DNA from: Bugula neritina
Lineage: Eukaryota > Animalia > Bryozoa
Length of the DNA: 64,000 bases
NCBI GenBank assembly: GCA_964035545.1
Contig: OZ037770.1
Location: forward strand, 10,994,463-11,058,462
Direction of reading: 5' to 3'
The position numbers were made by a program, and so were the translations under genes. Positions 5,701 through 45,102 of this stretch are shown piece after piece. Positions within the stretch are counted from its first letter, which is position 1; the number at the start of each line of letters is the position of its first letter. The notes under the pieces were generated by a model, which searched no databases, was not told the DNA's origin, and saw only the letters and a list, made by a program, of their open reading frames with translations.

Positions 5701-6350
5701 CTATTCTATTTTTGCTATTACAATATTTTACTTCACTTGCTTATTGAATGACGTGCAATTTCTTTTTCAAAGTACTTGTTTTTACAGTTTAAAACTATAT
5801 ACACTTGGTTCAATTTAATTGAACTTTTCCTGTTATATAAAAAAATATATATATACAACTTTCATTACCTAAACAAAATATAAGAATAAGCAAAACATCA
5901 ACAAATGTAATGAGGATGATACAGGGTGCACTTCGAATTATTAGACATGAAAATCCTTATTCGATTTTAAAAAGGAAATACATAACATAGGAAATTGAAG
6001 TGTAATTTTTTTTATTTTGAACGCATGGCTATATCAGTTCCTTACAGAGAGTAATGGCATAGTGTGAATAGAAGTTGAAAAATAATTTTTTTTTAACTGA
6101 AATTGTTGGATAATTAATTATAGCAGACAAAGTAGAACAAAACCAATTGAGTTTCTATACTTTGCATAGTACAAATGTAATATAGCTTTTATTACTCAAA
6201 AAGTAAAAATGAGAAGACAATTTCAAAGTAAAAATAATATGATATATTCTGATAACAGAGGGGGCTCTGTTTATAGGCCCCCTATGGTATCGAAATATAC
6301 CAAATGCATATAAGCCCCCTATGAGCAGCCCCCTATGAAACCACATTTAA

Positions 6351-6352
<2 letters not shown>

Positions 6353-6441
<89 letters not shown>
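6353..6441. repeat. (TA)n microsatellite
   Basis: Direct reading. Confidence 0.97.
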
Positions 6442-6445
<4 letters not shown>

Positions 6446-8164
6446 CATCAATTACTTGTAACTTCTTGCAGCTTTCGTCTGGCATTTGTTCAAGCTTTGT
6501 TCCTACACAACATATTGAAGCTTTTCTTGAATTTCAGAAGCATATAAGTTTATAGAAACAAATTGAATACTAGATAAATCTCTGGTATTTTCCTGGGTAA
6601 GAAGGTTTCATGCTACATTTGAGAAACTATGTTCAAATTCATGTGAACTTAAAGACCTTCTTTTCAATTTGTCTTCAGGATTTAAAAAAAATTGTTTTTT
6701 TTTGTTTGAAATTGAATTTAGTGCATTTCTATCTATGCAATATGAATACAAGAGCTGTAACATAATAAAAGACTTTCTCAGACAACAGCATACTCAGAAC
6801 TCATGTCATTAGCAGATCTACCTGTGAAATATGAGATGTTATATTACTCGATGTTCATCAAGAAGGAAGTTGGAAAGCAATTGAAAATAATTGTTAAGTA
6901 CAAAATATAATTTATGTAACTCCAGATATCTAAGGAACTTTAAAAGTTCGTTTACGCCAACTCGATTGTATATTGGACAAAAAAGACTATTCCACACGCA
7001 GCAGAAAAACCCGCATTACTTGGGCAAGAGCTGTTGTCATTCAAACATGAGTCAACTAATCTATAACTAATTACAAGTTGTAGCAAATCGGATTGATAAA
7101 ACATGATTGCTAAGTGCAGAGGGCTTCATACAAGCCTTTATGATAGTGTCTAGCATTCGATGAGAATATATAAGATATTAATGTATACATGTAGTAGCAA
7201 CTATAATATAATACGGCTGTATTGTTTAAGAGAAAGTATGTGTGTGCTGTACTGCTGTAAACAGCTATTTCTGTAAATATCACCACACCTAATCATAATA
7301 GAAAATTGGAGATCATAATATCAACATCTAACTATAATAAATATTGTTGCTAAAATGCTTCAAGCCTCCAATGTATTTTAATTGTGTTTTTTCTTTGAAT
7401 AAACTCTAAAAACCTTTTCAACTTTTACATGATTACACAGCAATTCTAATCATATGCTCATCATAGGTATAAAAAAGATCATCATATTAAAAACTATGAG
7501 GTTATATAGGTTTTAAATTGCAGTTTACGGAATAAAAAGATATATCAAGTTCAGTACAATTTACGGTTCAGCTTTTAATTTTTCTTCTAATGTTTCCCTT
7601 CTACATTTTGTTCTTAGATATGTGAATTAAATTCAATTTGAGTACCCATTACTTGATTGCTGTACTGTGAGATTGCTTCATGCTCCATTTGAATATTTGT
7701 AAACTCAATAGGCCTACATTGTTGTCAGTTTTAACTCCAGGGCTACAGGGAAGTTTTTGCAGGTTTAAAACCCAATTCAGTACATTATTTTCATGAATTC
7801 ATTTTTGAATACAAGTGCTGTCATGTAATATAAGACGTTCTTATACATTATAGCATACCAAGAATGCATTGATTATTATACCAGAGCTACCTGTGAAATA
7901 TAATATGGTGCTTAACTTTCTGTTCTTCAAGAAGGAAGTTGAAAAGCAGTTGAGAATAATTGTTAAGTACAAAATATAAGTTATGTAACTCTAAAAAAAA
8001 ATATATATATAACTCTAAAAGCACGCTACCATCCACGTGACTGCATGCTGAACAAGTCTAACTAGCTACATTTTGTAGCAAATCAGCTAAGGCAAAACAT
8101 GATTACTATAACTGCAAAAGTTTGTAAAGTAGCTTTTATAATATTGTCTTTTTTTATTGTTGTG

Positions 8165-11302: not shown

Positions 11303-11405
11303 TATAAATAAGAGTGTAGCTAAGGCTTTGTATCATTCATTTCGACACTATTATACTCAGAAGTATAATTTGTACAAACCAAGAAGCTTTTGTGACTTTT
11401 AAAAG
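11303..11405 (+). promoter_or_regulatory. Probable core promoter and non-coding first exon of BRICHOS gene 1
   Basis: TATAAATA at 11303-11310, Inr-like TCATTC with the A at 11335 (32 nt downstream), CCAAT-like motifs just upstream, donor AAAAG|GTTAGT at 11405/6. The ATG at 11969 directly follows an acceptor AG, implying an upstream UTR exon. Confidence 0.6.
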
Positions 11406-11968
11406 GTTAGTATCAACTATAGTTTTGCATTAGTGATATTTCTAAAACAAATATTCAAAGATTATTTGCTAAGTAAATAAAATTATTGGTGATCAGAAAT
11501 AAATCAACTTTTTCTGAGAATAATTTTTAAGACAGAGTGCATGTTTTAAAAATTAGCAGTATATATATGCATATATAAATCATGTTTGTTCAATGTAAGA
11601 TAAACAATATATGAAGAGTTATTGTTTCATAATAAATTTTTGAGCAATTTTTTCTCACCTTTCTCTGCTTTTTCCTGATCGGGTGGCAACTTTGGATAGC
11701 AAAAAATCTAATTGAAAAATTTTGTTTCAAGTTTGAAATATTTTCAACAAAATTTTGGAAATAAAAATAGAATTCACCTCAGATTATTAAAACAATGAAA
11801 TATATAAAAATAGAAGGTTGATAAACACTTTTCATCAATTAATATCTAGAATGCAATTTTATTAAAAAGCTTACAGCTGCTGCCAAGTGGAAGGAAGTAC
11901 TTATTTGTAAGTACCATTTGATTTGAAAATTCTAAAGACCATAAAATAATATAAATTTTTGCTACTAG

Positions 11969-12325
11969 ATGAAATACTCCCAGGCTGGTAGAGGTAAATG
12001 GCAGGTGCTCGTTCTGGTGGTAGTTGTCTTCTCGCAAATATGTCATCACAGTTATGGAAAATTCATTGAAGCTGAATTGTCGCAGGTAAGCTAAGTCAAT
12101 AAGTAAGCTTGTCAACAGGTAAACTGTTTGTTAATTATGATAAATACATTTTATAACACACACACAACACAACACAGCACACACACACACACAACACACA
12201 CATACATATATATAGACACACATACATATATATATAGACACACATACATATATATATAGACACACATACATATATATATAGACACACATACATATATATA
12301 TAGACACACATACATATATATATAG

Positions 12326-12356
<31 letters not shown>

Positions 12357-13315
12357 GACACACATACATATATATATATATATATAGACACACATACATA
12401 TATATATAGACACACATCTTTGTTTATTTTAGGGAGGCTCCATCCTTGTAAATGTGCAATATAATGAGGCGAGGAATGTTGCCATTTGTGAATTTGAAGA
12501 TGACACAAAAAGCGTGCAAGATTACGACAAGGTGAAGCAAATAGTATATAGAATATTGGTGTTGCTTTTGATGTCTTTGTTTTTCTAGATCTTTTAAAAA
12601 CATGTCAAAAAAATATCATTTCATGTAGAATGTCCACGTGGCTCAAGATCCCGAGACCGGAGTTTGCTATGTCACTAAACTCCATGAAACAGCTGAAGAA
12701 GGGAATTGGTTGGATGAGTACTTGAATGACGAGAGTTCTGATTACCAAGTTAGGGCACGCAAGTATTCACTCCGCTTTCTGGATGACTTAGAAGAAGGCA
12801 GCAGTCTCATTCCAAGGGAAGCTGAAGAGTTTTGCTTTAACGGGTATAAGAGAGCCGTGCATGACTGTTCAACAAGCACCTCTAACTGGTTAGTCTTTTT
12901 TTCTATTATATATAAATCAACTTAGGATTGCAAACTGCATTCATTCTTATATCATACTGATTTCTATTGACCAAAAATTCAAGTTAAAGTTTGCTTGTGC
13001 AATAAGACTTTCACATAGGCCCATATTACGCCTTTTAGTTTAAAGGAAGGCTTCTTGATCTCTTTAGTAAGTAAGACTGCTGCAGCTGGCAATGTTATAG
13101 TTTATAAGCTCTATAAGCAATGTTCTGGTGATGTATTTTCAGAGCCTCGAACTAGGTTCCGTCGTTTCGGCTTCAGATTCAGATTCAGAGTCGGAACCTT
13201 TGTCAGAAGCGTTGTTGTGCCTGTTGCGACAAAGGCAGCTGTTGCTGCTATTTTGGCTCGCTCAGAAACCACTTCTCCTGATGCGGAGATAATAGCCATT
13301 GAAGTAACTAAGTAA
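11969..13315 (+). CDS. BRICHOS-domain precursor 1 with cationic peptide (putative antimicrobial peptide precursor); exons 11969-12085, 12433-12531, 12629-12888, 13143 (or 13156)-13315
   Basis: MKYSQAGRGKWQVLVLVVVVFSQICHHSYG signal/anchor; ...VQDYDKNVHVAQDPETGVCYVTKL...LIPREAEEFCFNGY (BRICHOS Asp, CY and second Cys); last exon RTRFRR-FGFRFRFRVGTFVRSVVVPVATKAAVAAILAR-SETTSPDAEIIAIEVTK. Last junction has a phase anomaly (see findings). Confidence 0.8.
12157..12416. repeat. Compound (CA)/(TA) micro/minisatellite, ~22-bp unit gacacacatacatatatatata, in an intron of gene 1
   Basis: Direct reading. Confidence 0.95.
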
Positions 13316-14689
13316 CAGCTCCTGCCCGACACTTCATTAAAAAAGTTGCTGCTTTGACTTTTTTTCTCCCTTTTAAATTATGACCTTTGAAATTTTTAAA
13401 CACTTAGTAATATCATACTTAGCTTTTCTAATTTTTCCGGTTTCAACTTTACTGTAACAAATAAACATCGTTTTGTTTAGTAATCAACATACTTGCATAA
13501 TTTTTATATAAAAATTAATTTTTGTTGTAAGCATTTCATTTTTAATAAAACTTTGTCTTTTCACTTAAAATATTTTTCACTATTGATATTTCCTTAATCA
13601 ATATTAAAGTATAAAAATATCAGTAAAGCTTCCAAATAGGGCTGACAAGCATTTTTACATTTCAAGTAAAATTCAACTACTAGTGCATATTGAGTGTTTG
13701 ATTGTATTATGTCATTGTAAAAGTATGTCAATATAAATCCTCACAATGATAACTGTAACAGAAAGTGCTAAAAGCTATATCTGCTGTGTAAGAATCATAC
13801 ATGCAATGTTGCAATAGTTCTTTGCAATTGAATATAAATCCTATGCTAAAAATAATAAGTAATTTTGGTGATTCAAATCGCAAGGCACGAGCTGTTAGGT
13901 CCGAAACCTCAGCGCAACTGTCGTTTTATGAATAATTGAATAATAGGTTTGTGCAATACTCTTTGTGCATATAGCTGTTATTAGCAGGTCATATTATTAG
14001 TAGTATATTAGTAGCTTTATATTATTATTCTCTAAGGACATGAATGCTAGGGTGAGGATTGACTACATTTCGTGGCCTGAATGCCTTAAGAAGAAAAAGT
14101 GAAAATGATCAGCGGCTCTTAGAATTCTGCAGTAGAAACAGTTTAAGCATTAAAAAAAGTTCCTTCCCTAGTAAACAGCACAGAAAAACTATTTTTGTTT
14201 GAAGACTTGGCACCAACTTGACTTTGTGATTATATTTTATCAAAAACAGCAATATAAAGTCCTTAACACAAGTACCTACTACAGTGCTGCAGACTGCGAC
14301 ACTGATCACAGCTCTATTGTATCATCAATGGCATTGCAGGCTAAACCAGTGGTTCCCAACCTCTTTTATACTATTCCCCCCTTTCCTAAATGTTGGCTAT
14401 TAATTCCCCGCCTTTTGAAAATCGAAACAAATTTATGACTGACATAATGATAATATATATGATACAATGCAATGTATTTTGTTCAATTATATTTGCATAT
14501 AACATTATAACTATCACAATATTGTGATAGTTATAATTGAACTGCTCTGTATTTTATAACAATAATATAACTATAAAGTTATATTATTGTTATAAAATAC
14601 AGAGCAGTTCAATTATTAATGTTATGGCTGCAGTTGATGCTTTTGTGCCAGCTTGCTTAAGCCTGGCTCTGTTTTTGACCAGGCCAATC

Positions 14690-16244
14690 TGTAGTGAATT
14701 TTAAAAATGTAATTAGTAATTTAGTTTATATATCGAAAGGGTCGACTCTATGTCATGTTATTGTGGATGTCAACACATCTTACCCAGCCGACAGCATCTT
14801 ATAGTCGACATTGGCACCACTGATGCTAGCCAATCAGGAGTGACTGCTAATTAGTATCAGGTGGAGCTAGCTACGTATAGTGGAAGCACGCTAAGCAGCT
14901 AGCCGGGCAGACGAACAAACTGGACTACCCGACGGACACGCACACTGATACAGGCATTAATAGGGACGGACAACAATCGACGGAGTGACGAGTGCAGACG
15001 GACTTTTTCAACAATGAAGCGACTAAAGATACACATATCTCAACACTTTACTGCATGTAACTTTCTGTCCCTGTGGGGTCCACCACTTTTACAGGGACGC
15101 TATACTGCGACACCAAAGGACCCAGAACTGTTACATCGGACATTTATACAAAGTCGACGCTGACTCATACACTGAATTTCGAGACTTGATCCTACCACAT
15201 CTGACTGACCCAGACCGCAGACAGACGCTACTGTACCAGTTCTCCGCCACTCGACCGACAGTAGAAAGCGACTCAGACGCAGACCCCCAGTCCCCAGAGA
15301 CCACGACGACAACACATACTTCAGACGTGACAACACAGCCCCTTCGTGTTATTGTGACCCGCACTGGACGCACGATAGAAAAAGACTCACAACCCCCGAC
15401 TACAACTATCTCTTATGTGCCTAGTCGCCAGCAGAGGAAGAGAAAAAGTACTAGAAGTGCGACTAAGGAGAACACTAGCCCTGACCAGTTCCTACTGACA
15501 GACATAAAGAAGTTACAGAGACGTATGGCTCGTCTCTGCAAGGAGCAGAAGAGGGCGACTACTGAGTTAGCTAAATTGCAGACACGACCCGAGAAACGAC
15601 TGGCAAAAGAGTGAACAGAGGAGCTGTTCCCTTTCCCCTTCTCCCCCGTCTTCTTCTACTAGGACTGTGTGTCACGATGTAAATAGACTGTGTGTAACTA
15701 AATAGATTGTGCGTAGTAGAATCTTTTTTATCTCGTGTGTACGTATACTTATCCTGTCATGTATATTCTTTTTCTATCTTTTTTATATATCTAATCTTTT
15801 TAGTAATTCTCCCATGCCTGATTTAATCATAGAGTGTACCTTTCGATAGGTGTGGAGAGTGTAGTGGATTTTAATAATGTAATCAGTAATTTAGTTTATA
15901 TATCGAAAGGGTTGACTCTATGTCATGTTATTGTGGAGGTCAACACATCTTACCCAGCCGACAGCATCTTATAGTCGACAATGGCACCACTGATGCTAGC
16001 CAATCGGGAGTGACCGCTAATTAGTATCAGCTAAGCAGCTAGCCGGGAAGAGCAGCTTGGGACTTGACATAGAGTAGTTGTGTATAGATTGCTCTGCATT
16101 ATGTAATCGCGTAATTAGTTTAGTAGTTTCATTTATTGTATCTTTTGTAAATAATAAATTCTATATAACGTGATCAACCTGGTGAAGTATATAGCTTTGA
16201 ATAAGTAGACCCACATAATATAGTGGATTGTGAAATTCACTACA
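14690..16244 (+). mobile_element. Internally deleted LTR retrotransposon: truncated 5' LTR 14690-~14906, full 3' LTR 15860-16244
   Basis: Direct repeat of ~200 bp at 14690 and 15860; element termini TGTAGTGAATTT...AAATTCACTACA (12-bp inverted, TG..CA); purine-rich AGGTGTGGAGAG directly before the 3' LTR; no gag/pol left. Confidence 0.85.
14940..15614 (+). pseudogene. Accessory ORF of the LTR element (Cys/His zinc-finger-like N-part, T-rich middle, coiled-coil end), frameshifted
   Basis: CRRTFSTMKRLKIHISQH then, after a frameshift near 15060, FCPCGVHHFYRDAILRHQRTQNC...EFRDL continuing in frame into ORF 15186-15614. Confidence 0.55.
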
Positions 16245-17832
16245 CATTTTAAGTCACTTTACAGGTTAAGGCAATTTCTCTTTTCTTTGAAATGATGAAA
16301 ATGTTGTTGGTTTTTGCAAATTTTTTGACCTCCATTTGAAAGTAGCAAAGGAAGCAGTTAGGGTAGAGTAATTAATAAACACATCCATGTAGAAGTAAAC
16401 TGAGAATGTAGAATATCGTATGGTTAAATAAATGAACTAATATGGAGGTTTATAGATGTATATTATACATATACATGTATCTTATGCAAGAGCTCGAAAA
16501 GGTTTCATCAAACTTCGTAAATTTTTCAAAATTTTAAATTTCTCCTTAAAATGTCCGAATTCTCTCCAGGTTGGAAACCACTGGGCTAGACGGTATCATT
16601 GTCAATGTAAATAATCCATGAAGATAGATTTGAGTACAGCAGAGTCACTTGAACTTTGAAAACAATACTGTTATACGTTAAATGCTAAGCTTGGTAAGTT
16701 TAAGGATTTAGGCACTGATGTTGAAAGTTGCTGGAACGACCTGCAAAGAGCCGCATACTCAACTCCACAATTGATACTTTTAGACGTCGGAGGCGTTTAG
16801 ATTATTAATTGAATAGAGAATGATGTGACACCATTGAGCCTATCTTTGAAAGAGAACACGGAGCAATGCTCAAAATGTAATCAATAATTTTTCATGCCTC
16901 ACTTTGGCTCAAAAACCAGTTCATGAAAGTGCGAAGGTATTCTGATATTCAATATGTTCTCATATTGAAATTGCTAAAAACTCTGGAAACAGAAGGAAAT
17001 GTTTACTGTCAGCAAAACAGCCACAGGTCCTTATATTCAGACCTGCAGCATACTGAAGGACAAAATGGCTCTATCATAGCAGACAATTTCTAAAAGCTTT
17101 ATCGCTGGTTAGAGCATTACACAGTGAGCTTTATAGAGCTGTAGGCACAGCCAGCCATAACCATGGCAATAAAATCCCAGACTCGCCATGCAGTTCTAGA
17201 ACATCTAGGTATGACGCACATTTTTTTTAAAAATTATCACTATTATTCAGAACCTATGATCTGGTAAAGCTTCTAGTAGTCATGAAATCCTATTGGAGCT
17301 TTTCAAGTATGGCTTAGACCAACTGGCTAAACATCTACATTGTCTGATGAATAACTGCTGGCTTTCTTGATCTGCACCGCAGGGGTTTAAAGATGCAAAA
17401 TTTACTACTCTGTAAAAAATAGGACCGAATATGTGACAGAAATAACTACCTTGGAATTTCATTATTAAATGTTTCTGGCAGTCTTTGCGGCAACAAGAAG
17501 CTGATACAATATACTCTGAGTCACAATGTGAGTTCCACACACAACGATCAGCAAAAAACATGATTTTTGCTGTTTGCCAAATGATGGAGATTAACCGTGA
17601 GCAGAGAAGACCACGTCGGACTTTAGCTTTTGTAGACCCAGGCAAACTTCTGCCACTCATCACTGGCAAGTTGCAAAAGTTTTCATGCTACGAAACAAAT
17701 TTGTAGGTGAATAATTTTAAAATAAAAATTTGGTCAATTTTAACCTATAAAATCATAGCATCTGCAGGCTAAATCTTTTCAGAAAAATTTTGAGCACTAT
17801 TTTATAACTAGTATTACACTATCGTTTACCTA

Positions 17833-17839
17833 TTATATA

Positions 17840-17911
<72 letters not shown>
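17833..17911. repeat. (TA)n microsatellite
   Basis: Direct reading. Confidence 0.95.
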
Positions 17912-17914
<3 letters not shown>

Positions 17915-17974
17915 AAATGAGTGTTTATAAAACGTTACTAGAGTGCTCTATAGAAATAAATCTAGAGCGTAAAC

Positions 17975-18178
17975 ATTAGAAGAAATAAAATGAGATTTGA
18001 TTAATATAATGGCATTTATTACTAGTAGTTTCGTACACAAGAACGATGTGCACTCGTCAGATAAATTAGCCACTAGTGGCTAATTAGTGGCTAATTTATC
18101 TGACGAGTGCACATCGTTCTTGTGTACGAAACTACTAGTAATAAATGCCATTATATTAATCAAATCTCATTTTATTTC

Positions 18179-18185
<7 letters not shown>
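17975..18185. repeat. Perfect 101-bp-arm inverted repeat with 9-nt spacer
   Basis: 17975-18075 is the reverse complement of 18085-18185. Confidence 0.9.

Positions 18186-18259
<74 letters not shown>
18184..18259. repeat. (TA)n microsatellite
   Basis: Direct reading. Confidence 0.95.
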
Positions 18260-18262
<3 letters not shown>

Positions 18263-19810
18263 AACAATTACAAAATAATAAAGCGCTAGTATAACAAAGG
18301 TTCAAAATAGGATAACACATAAGAAAAATATAATTTGCCCTTTATAATGCAACTGCTATATGTTGATATTCTATATTATGTTGAAGTTATACTCTCCTTG
18401 AATCATGGCTATGAGAGCAAGAGAAAAAATTATAATCATTTAACTTCTGTTTAGGAGTTACCTGATTTTATATAATATTATATATGATGGCTCTTCCTTT
18501 TTGGTGTATGAAGTAGAACATAATTGAACAGCAAATGACACTCTGGTATTTAGCTGCATCCTTTGGGGTTTCAGTTTTCCTTTTTGGAGTTATGCTCTAA
18601 TGCCGGTGAACTCAATAATTTCTATTCAATTTTATCTGCAAGGTTGCAGGGAGGTTTATGCAATTTCAAAGTCACATCAGTTGTTAAAATATTTGAAGGC
18701 AAGGCTTGTCACGTAATATAAATTTTTTTATGCAGCAGCATACCATAAACTCATACTATTAGCATACCTGCATGCCTGTGAAATATGATATAGTATTCAT
18801 CTCTCTGTTCTTCAAAACAGAATTTATGGGAAGTGACTGAAAGAGGTTTCAATGCAAAATATATGTTACACAATTTTAAAAGCATGACTTATACTTCGCA
18901 ATTATTTAATTGCATGAAAACGTAATTTAGTAGAAATCAAATTTATTTGTCTCAGAATCATATAATTGTGGCATCTTAAACACTTTGGCTGTGCACATTT
19001 GTTTGGTAGATTTAAAAAGCAGGTATGAGTACTTCTTAATTTGATTTACTCAAAAATCTTAAGATTTTTTCAGCAGTTCAAGTCAAAAGTTCAAGTTGTG
19101 TAATGCTATTAGTTTTTTATGATTGCTTCTATAAATTGTCTATAAATTTGTTTTTATATCAGCTTTTTGACTTTATTAAAAAATAAATTGTTCAATTTCT
19201 GAAGTGATTTAAGAAATCAGTTTTTATCGTGCAGTGTATTTTATTAATAACATGTATGTAAGTAGAATTTGCTTCGTATTCTACAAAATTCCTATTGAAC
19301 AAACTATCAAATTATATAATTGTTTGCTTATGCTTTATAAGTTTTCAATTGCTTTTCACTAAAAATAGAAATAGTTGCATGTCATGGTTTATCAAAACTG
19401 ACCAATAAACTGCAAGAGCTGGGGAGAATGTAGTGTTTATGCATGAAAGGAATCATTGACTATCTATTCTTGTTCGATACCCACGAAAGGAAGGTGGGCT
19501 GTTTTAATTTATCGATGCTTTAGTAATAATTGTTTTAATTATATTATAGAGATCAATTTCATCATTTTTAAATATTAGCCATAATTTGAATGTCTTCATC
19601 TGACAAAAATTGTGGCGTTGTGTAACGGTGCAACATTATTTTTGTAACCATAAATTTACAAAAGTTTAATTTTAAAAGCATTTTGAGCTTCACTAACTAC
19701 ACCTGATGCTGTTTTGACTATCAAAACTTAACAGTACAATTATATAGCAAATATCTTTTTGTGCATTTCAAATACAGCTAATAGGTTCGCTATTGTTTCT
19801 GCACATACAG

Positions 19811-21879
19811 ATGGAGAAGTGGCTGTCCGTATCGAGTAAATGGAAGGTTTTCGTTTTGATTTTCATCTTCTTATTGCAACTTAACTCAAAGATTGAGGGA
19901 AGACTGTGCCCAGTTGACACTTGGAGTGTACGTATGTTCATTTAGTTTAGTCAAACGCAACATTTTTGATCCTCGTAAATCATATATTGTTTAATTTCAA
20001 AAAAGTGTGCTACTTGGGACGCTAGAAAGTCTAAAAAGTTCACAATATTTTGATTTATGGCAACATTGTTTAGTTAGGAGCAGCTGGTGTGGTGTAGTCG
20101 CTACAGTACTGCATGGCTAAGTACATACAAATGTTTATTTATATAGTCATAACTGCTCTTTTAAGCTACAATAATGTATAAGTCCTGAGCACTGCATATA
20201 CTTCGCAAAAAAAACTTTTTATAAATTATCGCTTTCATAAACTAAAAACATATGTGAGCTTTTTCATCATGCTGATAATTTTTACCACTCATATCATTTG
20301 AGTGGAATTGATTGCAGCTTGAAGTTCTCTATTAAAAACGCTACTTTTGATTTTTTTGACCTTCATTTCTAATTGTTATATATAACTTATTTTGAAATGC
20401 CATTGACTGTTATATAATTTTTATTATAATTAATTTTGAATACCTGTATGAGAGCATTAATAATATTTTATTTTGTAGAATCGGGGCATATTTCTAGACA
20501 TTGATTATGTAGAGGAAAGAAATGTAGCCATTTTTACTTTTGGCAACATGCAAAGTTTGCAAGACTATGACACGGTAAGAAGTTTCTTTTTATACAGTCA
20601 ATTTGTTTAAACTTGAATAATAATTCAGATATTTGCTAATCTTCAAAAATATATATAACACAGCAAACAAAATAAATTTGCAGCACTGAAAATAATATTT
20701 ATAATTGTAGGTGAATTAATAAGTTTTTAACTTGTCAATTTACAGATTGGTTTTGCAACGATGTTTGGGAAACCATATTTTTTTACAATTGGGAGCCAAT
20801 ATCAAATATGTGTATCTCAAAAAACTGCTGTACAGCAAAAAAACATATATACTAAATCATCTGCATTTTGTAACAATTTTGCTTTAGTGCAAAATTGTCC
20901 ATCGATTGGTATTTTTAGATAACTGTTTAAAGTTTGTGCCTGCAATAATTTTACAGGGTGTAAATATAGTGAAGAATCCAGTGACTGGTGTGTGCTATGT
21001 GACAAAGCTCCAGCAATCACCTGACTCTGGCGAAGATTGGCAAGTTTACCTGAATGGCTCCATGCCTGCTTGTCGGCTCAAAAGCACCCCCTACACGCTC
21101 AGCAATGTGACGGAAATGGAAGACACTAGCTACCTGCCCCCTGAGGCTCATGAGATTTGTCTTGATGGATACAAGGAAGCAGACGTGATGCCTTTGATTA
21201 GACGTAGACGTTGTAAGTATTAAACTGTTACGTTTCTTGTAGGCTAGAAAGTATAACAAACCTTTTTTATTTGTTTTGTATTTTCCAATTATTATTGTTA
21301 AAATAAAAGCACAGCGTTATTTAGTTAGCATTACTTTGATTTCTAACTGTTGCTTGAGGCTATATAATATGTATCATTTTTAAAATTTTGAAATGCACTT
21401 TTTCCATTTTGCTTGACCATTCTAAAGTGCGTTTAGCTTAGAAAAATTGAAAACATTTTTGAGATTTAAAAAGGTTTAACCATAATTTTTTTATTAATAC
21501 TTCTTTATTTTAAATAAAATAAGCAGACAAAAATTTAGCCGAAATTCTATATTATAAATTGCTGTTGATAGTTCGATTTCCGTGGAGTTACAAACCCAAA
21601 AGAAAACCAAAGCCAAGTTCAATATTTAGGCATGGATTTGGTGGGAGAGGATTTGGTTGGAGCCGAAACAAGTTCTTTGGACGAAAACGCTACTTGTGGA
21701 GAAGAGATATGACCACCCCTACTAGAAGTACTGTGTCCACTGAGACACTGACTATGAATTCAACTTCCATAACTCCCCAACCAACTCCCGAAGCTTCTAC
21801 AACTACTGAGAGCATTCCTGATGAGAAGTGGATAACAGCTCGAGGGACAAGAATTGTTGAGATTGAAATTCAATGTTAG
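19811..21879 (+). CDS. BRICHOS-domain precursor 2 with cationic peptide and S/T-rich spacer (~258 aa); exons 19811-19927, 20479-20574, 20957-21212, 21572-21879
   Basis: All junctions GT-AG and in phase (0,0,1). MEKWLSVSSKWKVFVLIFIFLLQLNSKIEG signal; LQDYDTGVNIVKNPVTGVCYVTKL...LPPEAHEICLDGY; IRRRR-FRFPWSYKPKRKPKPSSIFRHGFGGRGFGWSRNKFFGRKRYLWRR-DMTTP...RIVEIEIQC. Exon sizes match gene 1 (117, 96 vs 99). Confidence 0.85.
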
Positions 21880-22449
21880 ATAGACTTGCTTCCTGTTTTA
21901 AAAAAATACAAAATAATTCTGATTAACCTGCACTAAATACTACATATAACATTGTTTTTAATATATAATATGTGCATGCATGTCTTGCAATTTAATTTAC
22001 TTTATTTCATCTAAATCTTTTTGTTGTTTCATACTAACCAATAATTAGGAGCTGCAAAACAACTTGGTTGCATAATATGCAAATTATATCTATATATAAG
22101 ATAATGAGGAATTTCTTTTAATTTTGTTTTAAAATTTAAACTGTATCATTTTGAAAACTAACCACTGTCAATTTACATGAGAAATAAAGTCTTCCAAAAT
22201 CTTAACTCTGTAAATGTTTACAATTTATCTTTTGCTAAAGTAATGTAAATATACTTCTCCTTATGATCAAAATATACACCTAATATAGATTAAATATTTC
22301 TGTGCTTGCATATAGCTCTTGCTCATCATTATGCTTCTAAAGATTTAATTATTTTTAAATTAAAGTACAGGAACAGACGTTCTCGCCTCATCCAATGCAC
22401 ACGTAAATATATAAGTTTAATTTGCTTTTACATAATTTACTCTGTCTTT

Positions 22450-22578
22450 CACACACACACACACACGCACACACGCACACACGCACACACGCACACACGC
22501 ACACACGCACACACGCACACACGCACACACGCACACACGCACACACGCACACACGCACACACGCACACATGCACACAA
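22450..22578. repeat. (CA)n/(CACACACG)n microsatellite
   Basis: Direct reading. Confidence 0.95.
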
Positions 22579-22849
22579 ACTCATAATTAAAGATGCATTT
22601 GCTAAAATGTATTTAAATAGTGCAAATATGCGAATACAAGGCAAAAGGCACAAGTAGCCAAGAGCTTATCATATAGTATGCAACAGCCTAATTGTGCAGC
22701 TACATAATCAAAGTTCCAACAGTCATAGATGTTTCCATAAGTATGACTTAAGGCTATATTTACTCAGTTTGATTAAAGTAACTACATTAAATATACAATT
22801 TTGCTGGGTATAGTCAACTGTACGTATTAAGTTCTTGATAGCCTGTTAA

Positions 22850-23062
22850 CTCACGCAAGTTTATAGTCACTATAATAATCTATGTGAGAAACCACCGATG
22901 GAACGGGTATGTTGCTAAATCAGGCTAAAAACTTATTCAAATTGAGAACAGAAACAATTATGACTGGATGCTCTGCCTAACATCATTAATGGCCTTTGTC
23001 ATGACTTAAACTCATGGCTTTGTGCTTACTAGGCAAGCGCTCGAACCCCTAGACCACGGCTG
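22850..23062 (-). mobile_element. tRNA-derived SINE copy
   Basis: Homologous to 59890-60095 (aacccctagaccacgg, ctggatgctct, atggcctttgtca, gtttatagtcacta). Confidence 0.75.
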
Positions 23063-24706
23063 CCCCCTATATATGGCTTGATAGGCTGTTGCTGATTTCA
23101 AATTACTTATTTTAAACTTTACGTTAAGATTATGTTTGTCAATTCAGTACAATGCAAGTGTAAGTGTATGATTTACTTTTGGAGTTGAGATTCTCTAGTA
23201 GCTCCTGTATTGCAATGGTTGGCACGTTGGCGTACAAGTCGGAGGGCTGTGGTTTCATGTCTACAAAGAAATATTTTTACAAGGGCATAAGTTCCTTGTT
23301 AGCTGGCGTTACAACTGTGAGGCATGACTCTCAGTTTTAAGAACATTCTTGTTAACAATATATTTTCTATAGAAAGACATTTTATATAAACTGATAAATG
23401 AACAGATAAAATCTGCACCAGGTTAAAAGATTAAACCATTTATCAGCATTCATAATGACTGAAATAAAGAATTTGAATGACAAAAGACTTAATGGGAGAA
23501 AACAAGATCAAATAGATATGATAGAAAGTAGTTTAAGGAAGTTCCGCATTGAAAAAAACAAGCATTCACAGATATAATCTAATTACCTGCGCGGTATTTC
23601 TATAGACTATAGAGCTTAGGCTTGACATCACCTCTATCAGGCTGATGCTACTCGTTTTGATGATGTATAGCTTTGTAATCACCTAAAATCTAGGGTACCA
23701 TCTTTGATTGGCTTCTACTTATTCAAAACATCAGCTATGTCAAATAGAGCAAGAAACAGCAAGTTGTGACATTATAAGTATGTTTAATTTTGACAAGAAG
23801 TCCTCACATTTTACAGCATATGTTGAGACCCATGCTTTATTTGTTAAAAACAAAACTCTAATTTGCTGCTAGAGCAGAATTATAACTTTTGTTTCTGTTA
23901 AACAAATGAAATATGGCTCATTGTATCCAATGTTGATTTATGTACACTAACTGCAGCTACTTCATCAGTTAATTTTACACAAGTTTAGCAGAAGTAATCA
24001 ACGTTGTTTGGATGGAAATTATAGATGAAAAGACACCATAATTATAGCTAAACAAATAGTTATTATATAGCTATTACTGTAAGTATACTATCAACCAAGT
24101 TTTTAAATTATTTTTTCATTTTTAGCACAACAAGGAAAGTAAAATTTTTATTAGATTGAGCTTGAATGTTACATGCATTGCAGTACTTCCTTCTTACTTA
24201 GCCTGTGTTCTCTAAACTATGAAATAAACTTTAAATATATGTATTATTGTCTTGAGCTCAGTCTATGATTTAAACTCATCTTTGTTATCTGTTAACTTGA
24301 CTTCAATACATCTATTGTTTAAGGTTCTATTTGTATCATTGTTAACATATACTCATTGAATTCAATCAGTTGAAACCATCTCTGCGTCCGGGTAACACAC
24401 ATTCTACCAGCTCACAGGTAAATTTATCTACCAGTAAACTTATAGATATGTTTTCTACTTTCATGTACTTATTATAGCTATACGTTTTTTGACTACTTTT
24501 TAAGGAGATATTATGTTTTATAGTGAAAACAGCATTTATTAATGCAAAAAGTAAGCACAATTGATTTTTAGCACTCCTCAAACAATTTTAAGTTTCTTAG
24601 AGTAATCATGCAGTTATGTGTTTTTTGGGTTTCAAGGCTTTGTGGTACTAAATTAACAACAAATTCACTTATGTCTGTTTTATATAATACAGTTTGGAAA
24701 TCAGAA

Positions 24707-27184
24707 ATGGAGTACAAACTAACAAGTAGATGTTATGTCTTCGTACTGACGGCAGTTGTGTTTTTGCAACTTTCTCATCAAAGTTCTGGCACCATGTTTC
24801 GAGTGAGACTTCCCGGGGTATGCTATATGTCCATGATTTAATAAATTATGTGAATTAAGAAACATGTTAAAAACAAAAACATTCTTTTTAATAATATTAC
24901 AACTTTTATAGACGAACAAAATGCGTTTTCATTGATTGGAAACTTAAGACTTCCTGGCTTTAGCCAAAAGCAATGTTCTAATAAGTGTTTGTTATAAAAA
25001 GAAAATAATTTCTGAAAAAGGCACCATTTTACCTACTGAATAGGCCTACTGCATTTATTTTGCATCTATGCAATCATAACTAAAGGGGTTTTGTTTGCAT
25101 ATTTTATACTAGATCAACTTATAAATACATCCCAAGCCTTCCAATTGCAGTGATTTCTGTTTATGATTCAAGTAGAAACAATTAGTGGGCTGCACCTAAG
25201 CTGGTATGAAATATGTGATATTCTAACTGTTGTAGGGTCACGACCTGGAGGTTGACGTAACCTACAATCGCCAAGAAGCTGTTGCAACGTGTCAATATAA
25301 GAGTGGTCTCATCGTGCTACAAGACTATGATAAGGTAAGATAACGATCATGGAGACTATTCAATATTTTTCAATTGCAAGAATCAGGTGTTAAATCTATC
25401 TATTGTATACTGGAATGCTCGTATCAAAAGAAATCTTCAATATAAAGTTCAATCAGAAACTATATAATGTATTGTGAGTTGTTCACCTTGTGTAAACCAT
25501 AATATATAACTATTGAAACAGACAAATGAAGCAACAAAGCATTTAGTTGAAAATATTTAACCAAGCTTATTTGGCACTTGATGTATCCATTATTCATTTG
25601 TGAGTTTTACTTTTCTAAAGTTATTATTAATTTATTGAAGTATATACTTTTAATAAAATTCATTCTAGTTGGTCTTTTTTAACTAAATTATGATATATTT
25701 TGCAAAACATAGAAATTTCTAGAATATTTATGCTGATTAGGTAAAAATTAATAAAAGAAAAATTTGATTGTATTGGTCAAAATAAGTTTGTATATACTTT
25801 TAGATGTCAAAGGTAGCTAGAGATCCAACCACAAAGTTGTGCTATGTGGGAAGGTTTGACAGTCAATCGCCTATGGATGGTCTAATAATTGACCAGTACC
25901 TAAAACAAAATTCTAAACTTAACAAGTGAGTAATATCAAAAGCCTGTAAGAATTGAAAAACTGTTACATCTCCGCCTTGCACAAAGCACCAAAAGCTAGC
26001 ACATCTTATTTTAAAGTTCTTGTATATAAAATGAATTAAGTTACATAACCTATCAACAAGCTTTTTGCATTTAGATTATATTTTAACTGTAAAATATCAA
26101 TATTTTCTAGGTATATTTGTGCATTAATTATCGCAATGACTGCACAAATGGAAATTTCAACATTGGCCCTATTTATTAAACTTGGTTTGCCTACAAACCA
26201 GACTACATTATTTAACCTTGCTTGATATCTTTTGCATTGATTAATGGTGCTGTTTTAAAGTTTATCTAGTTTTAAAACTTTACCAAGAAAGCTTGTTATT
26301 ATAAAAATTGTATTTTAATAGGCTGGTTCTGAAAGTTGAGAAGAAGCCCTACTTTCTTGCAAATCCCTCACTGCCATTTGAAGATTTGGTCCCAAAGAAT
26401 GCTGAAGACCTTTGTCCTGAAGGATTCATTCCAATAACTAAGAAAGCGGAATTTGGTATAATATATATTTACCTAAATCTATAATATAATATCTAAGAAA
26501 GTCTAAGTTATAATATTTCTAGTTACTTACAGTAATCATTACCTCAGGCTAAAGGCGGTTGACAGACAAAACTTTTGCAAGACACCCTGTGAAGCATATT
26601 TTGAAATAAATGTTCATTATTTTTTATGAGAGCACCATTTGCATATGTATTAAACATTCAACCACACATATCACCTGCAGTGTCTATAATAGCTTTAGCT
26701 ATAGTTTACTTTTGTAAACTTAAACATCTTTTCCTGCATTCAAGGTTTTATGCAAAAATTGTTTACAAAACTTGATTATTTAAACTGTCTGTTCAAAGCA
26801 TATAATGCATAATCACAATGTTTTTTAAGAAAAGAATGCGTCACAAAAAGTAAAAAAAATTATGCTTATTAGACACACTATATTTTTGCAAATAAATTTA
26901 ATGACTGCTAATTAAGAAAACCTAATTGACATTATGTAAGAAGTATAAATCAACGTTTGAAAGGAGTAACCATTTTGGTTGAAATATATCAGTTTGGCTT
27001 CTTATAATGCATGAAAATAGTCTAAGCTAATAAAAGTTGAGAGAGCTGTAAAGTCAATTATGAAGTTTCACATATGTTTATATATGTCACAGCTGCTGAT
27101 GATCCTGAGCTTACCAAGCCAACTGTGGAAATTGGGCTAGAGGTTATCCTGGAGTACAACATGGATGATGACATAATTCAATAG
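24707..27184 (+). CDS. BRICHOS-domain precursor 3, no cationic peptide (~185 aa); exons 24707-24817, 25236-25334, 25804-25925, 26322-26455, 27093-27184
   Basis: GT-AG junctions in phase (0,0,2,1). MEYKLTSRCYVFVLTAVVFLQLSHQSSG signal; LQDYDKMSKVARDPTTKLCYVGRF...LVPKNAEDLCPEGF; tail AADDPELTKPTVEIGLEVILEYNMDDDIIQ. Mostly invisible in the ORF track. Confidence 0.82.
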
Positions 27185-33319: not shown

Positions 33320-34282
33320 ATGGAGAACAACAGCTTCCTGTGTGAGAATGTTCCAGAACTATGTGCTGACTCAACTATTTCTACAGCTGCTACTTTACTC
33401 AACATGTTTAGCGTGGTGTGCAACATTCTAAACTTGATTGCGCTAAAAAGCTTGGACAAGTCAAAGAGAAATGGATACTTTTGGGTCGTGATAAATATTG
33501 GAATTTTAGACATAGCTACAGGTATAATCTTTACCTTATATGTCAGCTGTGACTTTAACAGGCTTGTGGTAAAACTCTCTGACAGAGAGGTCTTGGTGTA
33601 TCAAGTTGTAATCAACATACTTGGCTTTGCCACATACTTTGCTCAAAACCTCATCTTGGTAACTGGTAGCTATGAAAGATATACATGTCTCCATATGTCA
33701 ACCATTCAATGTACAGACAAACAAAGTGCTTAACAACTTAGGAGCTTGCCTTGGAACAATCTGGATAGTTAGTCTTGTCGTGATGGGTGTTCCCTTAGCC
33801 TCTGACACTAAAAACTACTGTTTTAGTCTATTTGGATCTATGCCAATGGAATTCAATGTTCAAACTGACGTAGTGTTTGCAAGCTCCATAACAATAACTT
33901 TAACAACGTGTGTGATTCTGCTATTCAAAACTTGGAAAGAACTTAGAAGAATGCAACAAAGGAACACAGCTAGAGCAGATGACTTGATGGTGAAAAGATC
34001 AGCTCAATACATTTTGATTATTTGTGTCACATTTTACTTGCAATATGTTCCAGCTTTCATGTCAGTAACCTTTAATGTAATTGAAGCTTTGCCAAAGGAA
34101 ATAGCTATTGTCACCAGGTGGATATCTATGTTTTACCAATCTGTTTATGGTATCCTAAACATTGCTGCTTACATCATATAATGACTTCTGGCTACAGATC
34201 CCATATCATCAGAATACTTCGAGTTAGGAAAATCGAGATACAACCCGCCGAAAATGTCTCTACCAACAGAGGAAATTGTTGA
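33320..34282 (+). pseudogene. Class A (rhodopsin-like) GPCR paralog with two frameshifts
   Basis: Highly similar to 44146-45102; +4 nt (ACAT) right after the ERY codons (~33681) and +2 nt at ~34178; split into ORFs 33320-33733 and 33672-34181. Confidence 0.85.
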
Positions 34283-44145: not shown

Positions 44146-45102
44146 ATGGCAAACAACAGTATTCTGTGTGAGAATGTTCCAGAACTCTGTGCTGATTCAA
44201 CTATTTCCACAGCTTTCATGACACTCAACGTCGTTGGTGTTGTATGCAATATGCTACACTTGTTTGCGCTAAAAAGCTTGAACAAGTCAAAGAGAAATGG
44301 ATACTTCTGGGTGATAGTAAATATTGGAATTTCAGACATAGCTACAGGTATAGTCTTTACCTTATATGTCAGCTGTGACCTTAACAGGCTTGTGGTAAAA
44401 CTCTCCGATAAAGAGGCACTGGTGTATCAAGTTGTAATCAACATACTTGGCTCTGCCACATACTTTGCTCGAAATCTCATCTTGGTAACTGGTAGCTATG
44501 AAAGATATGTCTCCATATGTCAACCATTCAATGTACGGACAAACAAAGTGCTGAACAACTTAGGAGCTTGTCTTGGAGCAATCTGGATAGCTAGTCTTAT
44601 CGTGATGGGTGTTCCCTTAGCTTCTGACACTAAAAACTACTGTTTTAGTGTATTTGGATCCATGCCAATGGAATTCAATGTTCAAACTGATGTAGTGTTT
44701 GCAAGCTCCATAACAATAACTTTAACAACGTGTGTGATTCTGCTATTCAAAACTTGGAAAGAACTTAGAAAAATGCAACAAAGGAACACAGCTGGAGCAA
44801 ATGAGTTGATTGTGAAAAGATCAGCCCAATACATTCTGATTATTTGCATTACATTTTACTTGCTTTATGTTCCAACTTTTCTAGCAGTAATTTTTAATGT
44901 AATTAAAGTTTTGCCAAAGAAACTGGCTATTGTGACCAGATGGATATCCATCTATTACCAAGCTATTTATGGTACTTTAAACATCGTTGTATACATCGTG
45001 ATGACTCCTGGCTACAGAACCCACATCATGAGAGTACTTCCAGTTAACACAATCAGAGTACAGCCCATCGAAAATATCTCCAACAACAGAAATAATTGTT
45101 GA
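44146..45102 (+). CDS. Intronless orphan class A GPCR (318 aa), possibly chemosensory
   Basis: Seven hydrophobic segments; TM1 CN, TM2 NIGISD, TM3 SYERYVSICQPF, TM4 W, ECL2 Cys, TM6 YVP, TM7 LNIVVY (non-canonical NPxxY). Confidence 0.9.
   Translation: MANNSILCENVPELCADSTISTAFMTLNVVGVVCNMLHLFALKSLNKSKRNGYFWVIVNIGISDIATGIVFTLYVSCDLNRLVVKLSDKEALVYQVVINILGSATYFARNLILVTGSYERYVSICQPFNVRTNKVLNNLGACLGAIWIASLIVMGVPLASDTKNYCFSVFGSMPMEFNVQTDVVFASSITITLTTCVILLFKTWKELRKMQQRNTAGANELIVKRSAQYILIICITFYLLYVPTFLAVIFNVIKVLPKKLAIVTRWISIYYQAIYGTLNIVVYIVMTPGYRTHIMRVLPVNTIRVQPIENISNNRNNC

Follow-up and report, generated by a model that had tools for sequence, protein, structure and literature searches.

Bugula genes encoding candidate BRICHOS-carried defence peptides with an internal, variable payload

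Polychaete BRICHOS precursors release tested antimicrobial peptides (AMPs) of several structural classes (PMC10745061), and reviews describe BRICHOS-AMPs as polychaete-only, with the cargo at the C-terminus (PMC6780910). In Alvinella, tandem copies have recombined without exon shuffling and the peptide is conserved (PMC5431198). Here we describe a gene cluster in a 64,000-nucleotide stretch of a Bugula genome (assembly GCA_964035545.1, contig OZ037770.1, positions 10,994,463 to 11,058,462 of the forward strand; hereafter the window). Three paralogues, genes 1 to 3, lie on its plus strand, and two further genes, paralogues A and B, lie on the minus strand 14-25 kb upstream of the window (contig C6), giving a five-gene cluster. 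These genes probably encode secreted host-defence peptide precursors that are cathelicidin-like in layout and built on a BRICHOS carrier, a reading to which we assign a probability of roughly 0.6.

The polychaete BRICHOS-AMPs (arenicin, alvinellacin, capitellacin, nicomicin, HfBRI) resemble the bryozoan genes in having a signal or anchor, a BRICHOS domain with an Asp and two Cys, a furin-type site and diverse cationic cargo, Cys-free linear forms included, and in forming tandem, recombining multigene families (PMC5431198). However, their cargo is C-terminal, whereas the bryozoan cargo is internal with an acidic linker and a conserved strand behind it, and the classical worm peptide is a disulfide-closed hairpin, whereas the bryozoan payloads contain no Cys (exceptions among the worm peptides are given in PMC10745061). 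Moreover, the host here is a bryozoan and Pro/Arg-rich cargo is present. In Alvinella it is the chaperone that diversifies and the peptide that is conserved, the reverse of the bryozoan cluster with its exchange of last exons. The cathelicidins of artiodactyls and cetaceans are alike in that three coding exons encode a conserved pro-region and a fourth the variable peptide, and in that the peptides of tandem paralogues belong to unrelated classes, Pro/Arg-rich ones among them (PMC7582929). They are a functional analogue only, as the cathelin carrier is unrelated in fold, the peptide is C-terminal and no docking strand lies behind it. Bri2/ITM2, gastrokine and OAF share the fold, extra N-terminal strands included, and a C-terminal beta segment has been modelled on the domain (PMC9714404). 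There the docked segment is the mature product, whilst in the bryozoan proteins a separate disordered peptide precedes the strand. Precursors of the piscidin/pleurocidin, styelin and mytilin type place a cationic peptide before an anionic C-terminal propiece and have no BRICHOS carrier.

Literature searches, which left most subscription papers outside their reach, returned no paper on BRICHOS proteins or gene-encoded AMPs of bryozoans, and no description of an internal-payload BRICHOS protein or of proline-rich BRICHOS cargo. An earlier note on this DNA, made from the sequence alone, did not recognise the architecture as a described one. For the internal payload these searches agree, but Cys-free cargo has precedents in the linear BRICHOS peptides HfBRI-28, -20 and -23, and HfBRI-54 is a hairpin followed by a Thr-rich tail (PMC10745061), both of which tell against novelty. 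By analogy, the cluster appears to work like a BRICHOS-AMP or cathelicidin precursor, whilst falling outside the C-terminal-cargo definition of the polychaete family.

All three window genes encode a short hydrophobic N-terminus and end in a hydrophobic/acidic strand, and they have the QDYD and CYV motifs and the second Cys, in agreement with the earlier description of three same-strand paralogues. Eight gene-1-type copies, five of them belonging to the other Bugula lineage and three to this genome, were compared in 28 pairs. Median pairwise identity was 79% for exon 3, 71% for the furin segment and 73% for the terminal 11-mer, but 21% for the payload, which substantiates the proposed conserved scaffold with a hypervariable internal payload. 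With gene 2 and its orthologue the set comprised ten payloads, all ten preceded by an R-X-[KR]-R furin motif and ending in Arg. The motif is on the last exon in gene 1 and at the end of exon 3 in gene 2. Net charge was +5 to +15 in 8/10. As the earlier note had it, the payloads are Cys-free (10/10) and internal: each is followed by 14-60 residues of net charge -1 to -4 that end in a hydrophobic strand, and none is at the precursor C-terminus. Pro/Arg-rich repeat payloads of 36-74 aa (Pro 24-31%, net +7 to +14) were found in paralogue A and two sister copies, not in the window genes. Gene 1 has a payload that alternates Arg and Phe and then turns hydrophobic (+6), gene 2 and its orthologue have Gly/Lys/aromatic ones (+13 to +15), a further two payloads are near-neutral (+1) and one is a short remnant. 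KR closes one payload (paralogue B). Gene 2 contains a G-RKR motif; amidation of its peptide was rejected as a conserved feature because the orthologue does not keep the motif.

Exon 3 of paralogue A is of the gene 1 type (93-94% DNA identity), yet its intron 3, last-exon end and 3′ untranslated region (UTR) group with the Pro/Arg lineage. Likewise, the gene for P0103, a full-length cluster-type relative, has a B-type exon 3 (89%; bootstrap 97) yet a Pro/Arg payload, B itself carrying a near-neutral one. In approximately unbiased (AU) tests the exon-3 and last-exon partitions each rejected the other's tree (p = 3e-5 and 5e-7, values that are optimistic because the trees were picked after the fact). 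The conflict between these trees indicates that the last-exon cassette was exchanged between tandem paralogues, in line with the swappable cassette first proposed. The ratio of non-synonymous to synonymous substitution rates (dN/dS) between gene 1 and its orthologue was 1.19 for the payload, 0.23 for exon 3 and 0.32 for the tail, with a 5-codon indel in the payload. Last exons evolve quickly, through substitutions, indels and expanding repeats.

Evidence for splicing and for the modelled precursor comes from P0103. Contig L061 (997 nt) is intronless and encodes the full 259-aa precursor, whereas the genomic copy of the gene has the intron; therefore, at least in this relative, the phase-1 last exon is spliced as modelled, in support of the earlier interpretation. 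In the P0103 model the payload was disordered (pLDDT, a score of local model confidence, 38-58) and a lone terminal beta-strand, E250-258, had a pLDDT of 85. Since a lone strand was assigned as beta by DSSP at this pLDDT, it probably pairs with the domain in the model, on face A or at the sheet edge, in favour of the packing that the earlier note proposed to test. The terminal strand of the P0081 model, another relative, had a pLDDT of 65-68.

With respect to the carrier, database searches on the window genes were run exon by exon and folds were made of natural full-length relatives. The conserved QDY Asp, CYV Cys and second Cys were found in 3/3 window genes. However, no window exon matched Pfam PF04089 (BRICHOS), relatives reached E values of 5e-4 to 0.04 (<25 bits, under the gathering score), and a PF04089 search of the genome gave a single weak, unrelated match. 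That match (L001, C2:27.567 Mb) is an exon of a separate subfamily whose C-terminal half is closer to the BRICHOS canon. A profile built without any cluster member scored exon 3 of genes 1 and 2 at 41 and 42 bits, against <=8.6 bits for 300 shuffles, so their homology is beyond chance. Gene 3 is the weakest link to BRICHOS; its exons alone were marginal against this profile, its motifs are present, its orthologue is intact and its dN/dS is 0.36. UniRef labels two relatives, P0081 among them, as BRICHOS domain-containing. The P0081 model (pLDDT 81) had three BRICHOS clusters as its top Atlas matches (template modelling score, TM, 0.56-0.58 over ~140 residues; next best <=0.42), a fold similarity that concerns the relatives and not the window proteins themselves. 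The P0103 model has a Bri2-like order of strands and helices, with the Bri2 and proSP-C BRICHOS domains at ranks 2 and 3 in the PDB (Z 4.5-4.7). Foldseek found nothing significant in the PDB (proSP-C at rank 50), and a sequence profile found no PDB match. Atlas language-model features agreed with BRICHOS at lead level (0.86). A cathelin domain was found neither by Pfam on the window exons nor by fold among the relatives' models. Taken together, the BRICHOS signature reported in the earlier note stands by its motifs and by the modelled fold of full-length relatives, but not by Pfam, and the family is best placed as a divergent bryozoan subfamily.

The gene models are as follows.

11303..11405, plus strand: gene 1, a TATA-like box plus a first exon that is probably non-coding (GT donor at 11406)
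11969..12085, plus strand: gene 1, coding exon 1, signal-peptide-like N-terminus (splice model, hydropathy)
12433..12531, plus strand: gene 1, exon 2, beta-strands and conserved Asp of QDYD (equivalent strands in the P0103 model)
12629..12888, plus strand: gene 1, exon 3 of 260 nt, coding for the BRICHOS core and both Cys; frameshift near 12857-12869 in this haplotype
13143..13315, plus strand: gene 1, last exon (splice model; orthologue L056)
13154-13165, plus strand: gene 1, furin motif RFRR within the last exon
13166-13261, plus strand: gene 1, putative payload of 32 aa, Arg/Phe-rich then hydrophobic, net +6, acidic linker after it
13286-13306, plus strand: gene 1, terminal strand EIIAIEV, 3′ of the acidic linker in the last exon
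19811..19927, plus strand: gene 2, exon 1, signal-peptide-like N-terminus (splice model, orthologue)
20479..20574, plus strand: gene 2, exon 2 with QDYD (splice model)
20957..21212, plus strand: gene 2, exon 3, BRICHOS core, RRRR furin motif at its end (21200-21211)
21572..21879, plus strand: gene 2, last exon (splice model, orthologue)
ends at 21705, plus strand: gene 2, putative payload of 45 aa, Lys/Arg/Gly/aromatic, net +15, Ser/Thr-rich tail after it
21850-21876, plus strand: gene 2, terminal strand and C-terminal Cys at the end of the last exon
24707..24817, plus strand: gene 3, exon 1 (annotated orthologue EB796_007678)
25236..25334, plus strand: gene 3, exon 2 (splice model)
25804..25925, plus strand: gene 3, exon 3 with the first Cys (splice model)
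26322..26455, plus strand: gene 3, exon 4 with the second Cys; KK, without a furin motif (splice model)
27093..27184, plus strand: gene 3, last exon, which lacks a cationic payload and encodes a short acidic linker plus a hydrophobic strand (splice model)
C6:10968.9-10970.4 kb, minus strand: paralogue B (L019), 26-aa near-neutral payload ending in KR
C6:10979.2-10981.2 kb, minus strand: paralogue A (L018), 64-aa Pro/Arg-rich payload

Joined models were used solely for frame checks and local comparison, the break in gene 1 being entered as X in comparisons. The exons of gene 2 measure 117/96/256/308 nt and encode 258 aa; those of gene 3 measure 111/99/122/134/92 nt and encode 185 aa. In both genes the frame is open, the splice sites are canonical (GT-AG) and the last exon is in phase 1. 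Gene 3 has one intron extra and lacks both furin motif and payload. The earlier description of matching exon sizes and phases needs correction for the extra intron of gene 3 and the frameshift of gene 1. The non-coding first exon of gene 1 is probable from its resemblance to the 5′ UTR of the spliced contig L061. By hydropathy only, the N-terminus has a short hydrophobic region in the cluster genes and a long anchor in the relative P0082. Gene 2 has three further Cys, at 19907-19909 (after the signal), 21074-21076 (mid-domain) and 21874-21876 (C-terminal), all conserved in the orthologue; one pair of these could tether the terminal strand covalently.

In exon 3 of gene 1 the GTTAGT donor is reached after 260 nt, compared with 256 nt in most sister genes and 259 in one, which places a frameshift near 12857-12869. 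Other candidate in-frame donors were rejected: use of 12866 introduces a stop, and that of 12843 or 12888 shifts the frame. The search for runs on the window returned no RNA run. Reads from the only public run found (type unrecorded, probably DNA, introns covered) gave two contigs at the break, one at depth 59.7 that equals the assembly and one at depth 58.8 with four fewer bases; run depth in the flanks was ~113-119. Because the two contigs are of equal depth and the flanks about double, gene 1 is read as two haplotypes, the broken one of the assembly and one in frame. Assembly error was ruled out as the cause of the frameshift, one run contig matching the assembly exactly. At the payload only ~59 depth of the run aligned, at 88% likeness, which suggests that the second allele has a diverged payload. 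The gene 1 orthologue of the other Bugula lineage (L056) is intact.

The published B. neritina contig is syntenic with the window for genes 2, 3 and the next G-protein-coupled receptor (GPCR) gene, at ~73-85% DNA identity, and the window genome is a Bugula, probably of a lineage sister to published B. neritina within the neritina complex. No gene-1-type gene occurs within 8 kb upstream of gene 2 on the published contig (L055:1-8100), and in the published annotation gene 2 is without its payload exon (EB796_007679, 97 aa) and gene 3 is cut short (EB796_007678). A whole-library profile search returned 25 proteins, every named member examined being from Bugula or Watersipora, and a metagenome scan for relatives gave one doubtful locus only (L053).

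A genome search found distant relatives on C2, C3 and C9, with a type II anchor, then a basic site, then C-terminal beta-prone cargo, encoded by a last exon at the same phase-1 intron as in the cluster genes. This cargo consists of short Ile/Thr/Lys strands (C3, C2:29.4 Mb) or four-Cys peptides behind a KR site (C2:12.3 Mb). At C2:12.25-12.29 Mb, five BRICHOS-like paralogues (L043-L046, L048) have last exons encoding differing four-/five-Cys peptides behind the KR site, and their exon 3 gave the family's best Pfam BRICHOS scores in this genome. At C2:29.416 Mb (L012), a BRICHOS-like gene is followed by two near-duplicate candidate last exons (6340-6400 and 6569-6630), each with a KRK site and a 12-13-residue beta-prone peptide. 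At C3:22.516, C3:22.522 and C9:7.90 Mb, type II anchored paralogues terminate with short cationic peptides in which Ile, Lys and Thr alternate; exon 3 of the C9 copy has a frameshift. The simplest history would be that the cluster genes kept the strand as a client and gained a second peptide ahead of it. When a terminal-strand profile was used, gene 2 alone scored (17 of 2000 shuffles), with no score for gene 3, for P0081 or for the C2 exons, and similarity between the strands was not significant; ancestry of the strand as cargo is therefore argued from exon position and models only.

Exons 1-3 encode a conserved signal-like N-terminus and BRICHOS carrier, and the last exon a furin motif, a variable peptide, an Arg, an acidic linker and a short beta-strand. 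We propose that the terminal strand fills the client site of the chaperone and so serves as an in-built latch, whilst masking of the cationic loop during secretion would fall to the acidic carrier and tail. The peptide would be released by two cleavages, one by a proprotein convertase at the R-X-[KR]-R motif and another at the Arg downstream. Pro/Arg-rich payloads may act like proline-rich AMPs, and the Arg/Phe-rich and Gly/Lys-rich ones on membranes; gene 3 would be a carrier without payload. More tentatively, it is possible that this is a self-latched carrier in which the retained strand occupies the chaperone and leaves an internal loop free for any peptide class, with an allele-variable payload exon shuffled among paralogues, a cathelicidin-like AMP diversification that evolved independently.

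Several points weigh against host-defence precursors on a BRICHOS carrier. We infer secretion, the two cuts, the latch role and antimicrobial action, and the probability given above covers them jointly. In this assembly no canonical donor joins the last exon of gene 1 in frame; the broken gene 1 of this haplotype and the missing payload of gene 3 both weaken the earlier interpretation. The claim of cationic cassettes likewise stands for genes 1 and 2, but not for gene 3 or for the two payloads of only +1. PDB Z-scores of the relatives' models were modest at 4.5-5.6, level with unrelated folds. Pairing of the terminal strand is a reading of DSSP and pLDDT rather than of contacts, and the P0103 fold alignment placed relatives' C-termini under that strand, which aided its assignment. 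In gene 2 the payload dN/dS against the orthologue was 0.66, against 0.45; the dN/dS values, drawn from 27-44 codons, do not exceed 1 significantly and do not establish positive selection. Moreover, the second cut is in doubt, since most copies have a lone Arg at the C-terminal boundary of the payload. This last point, and the single cut with a C-terminal beta-prone product that is standard for BRICHOS proteins (PMC9714404, PMC10182729), would suit a precursor cut once by furin, the payload with its acidic tail and strand being the mature product or staying carrier-bound, perhaps antimicrobial or self-assembling (adhesive, cuticle). The gene 1 payload is indeed strongly alternating (beta moment 1.06). 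Yet the boundary Arg is kept in 10/10 payloads despite their divergence, an acidic tail would partly neutralise the cationic part and Pro-rich payloads form no fibrils, and we regard a single cut as unlikely.

The same anatomy and fast divergence would also be expected of deterrent, antifouling or cytolytic peptides aimed at eukaryotic grazers, settlers or competitors instead of microbes; cationic amphipathic peptides often lyse eukaryotic cells, and the animal is sessile. We consider such targets distinctly improbable, as tested worm BRICHOS cargo is antimicrobial and the Pro/Arg-rich repeats resemble peptides that target the bacterial ribosome (PMC7582929). Neutral drift of the payload as a linker, in a decaying cluster where the carrier alone matters, seems very improbable. 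Although it would accommodate the frameshifted gene 1 haplotype, a sister copy (L054) without the first Cys context and with a short payload, the persistence of gene 3 without payload and a dN/dS near 1, orthologues retain both net charge and marked, distinct themes of composition (Pro/Arg, Arg/Phe, Gly/Lys), the gene 2 payloads are +15 and +13 at dN/dS 0.66, furin motifs are conserved and indels are in frame. Least credible are neuropeptides or hormones: a signal peptide with an internal peptide flanked by basic residues is a prohormone layout, to which the KR end and G-RKR motif would add, but the payloads are hypervariable (21% identity) and the amidation signal is lost in the gene 2 orthologue.

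The window also contains other elements. At 14690-16250 lies a dispersed repeat of ~1.35-1.5 kb with 171-nt direct repeats 1170 apart and no long open reading frame; it looks like a non-autonomous long-terminal-repeat-type element and has dozens of 65-88% copies across the genome. A palindromic element at 17912-18190 (106-nt arms, 98% complementary) sits within a TA microsatellite, and intron 1 of paralogue A holds a related copy. Two intronless GPCR genes of the rhodopsin family (7tm_1, TAS2R-like), near duplicates of each other, occupy 33320-34181 and 44146-45102, the former being split across two frames.

Lastly, the cluster offers about ten synthesis-ready candidate peptides of several structural classes. 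Host-defence precursors of this kind would extend BRICHOS-borne AMPs beyond annelids and would separate the client of the chaperone from its cargo, which bears on the role of BRICHOS in such precursors. The exon layout converges on that of cathelicidins. Bugula neritina hosts a defensive symbiont, and that host peptides shape its microbiota is a testable idea.

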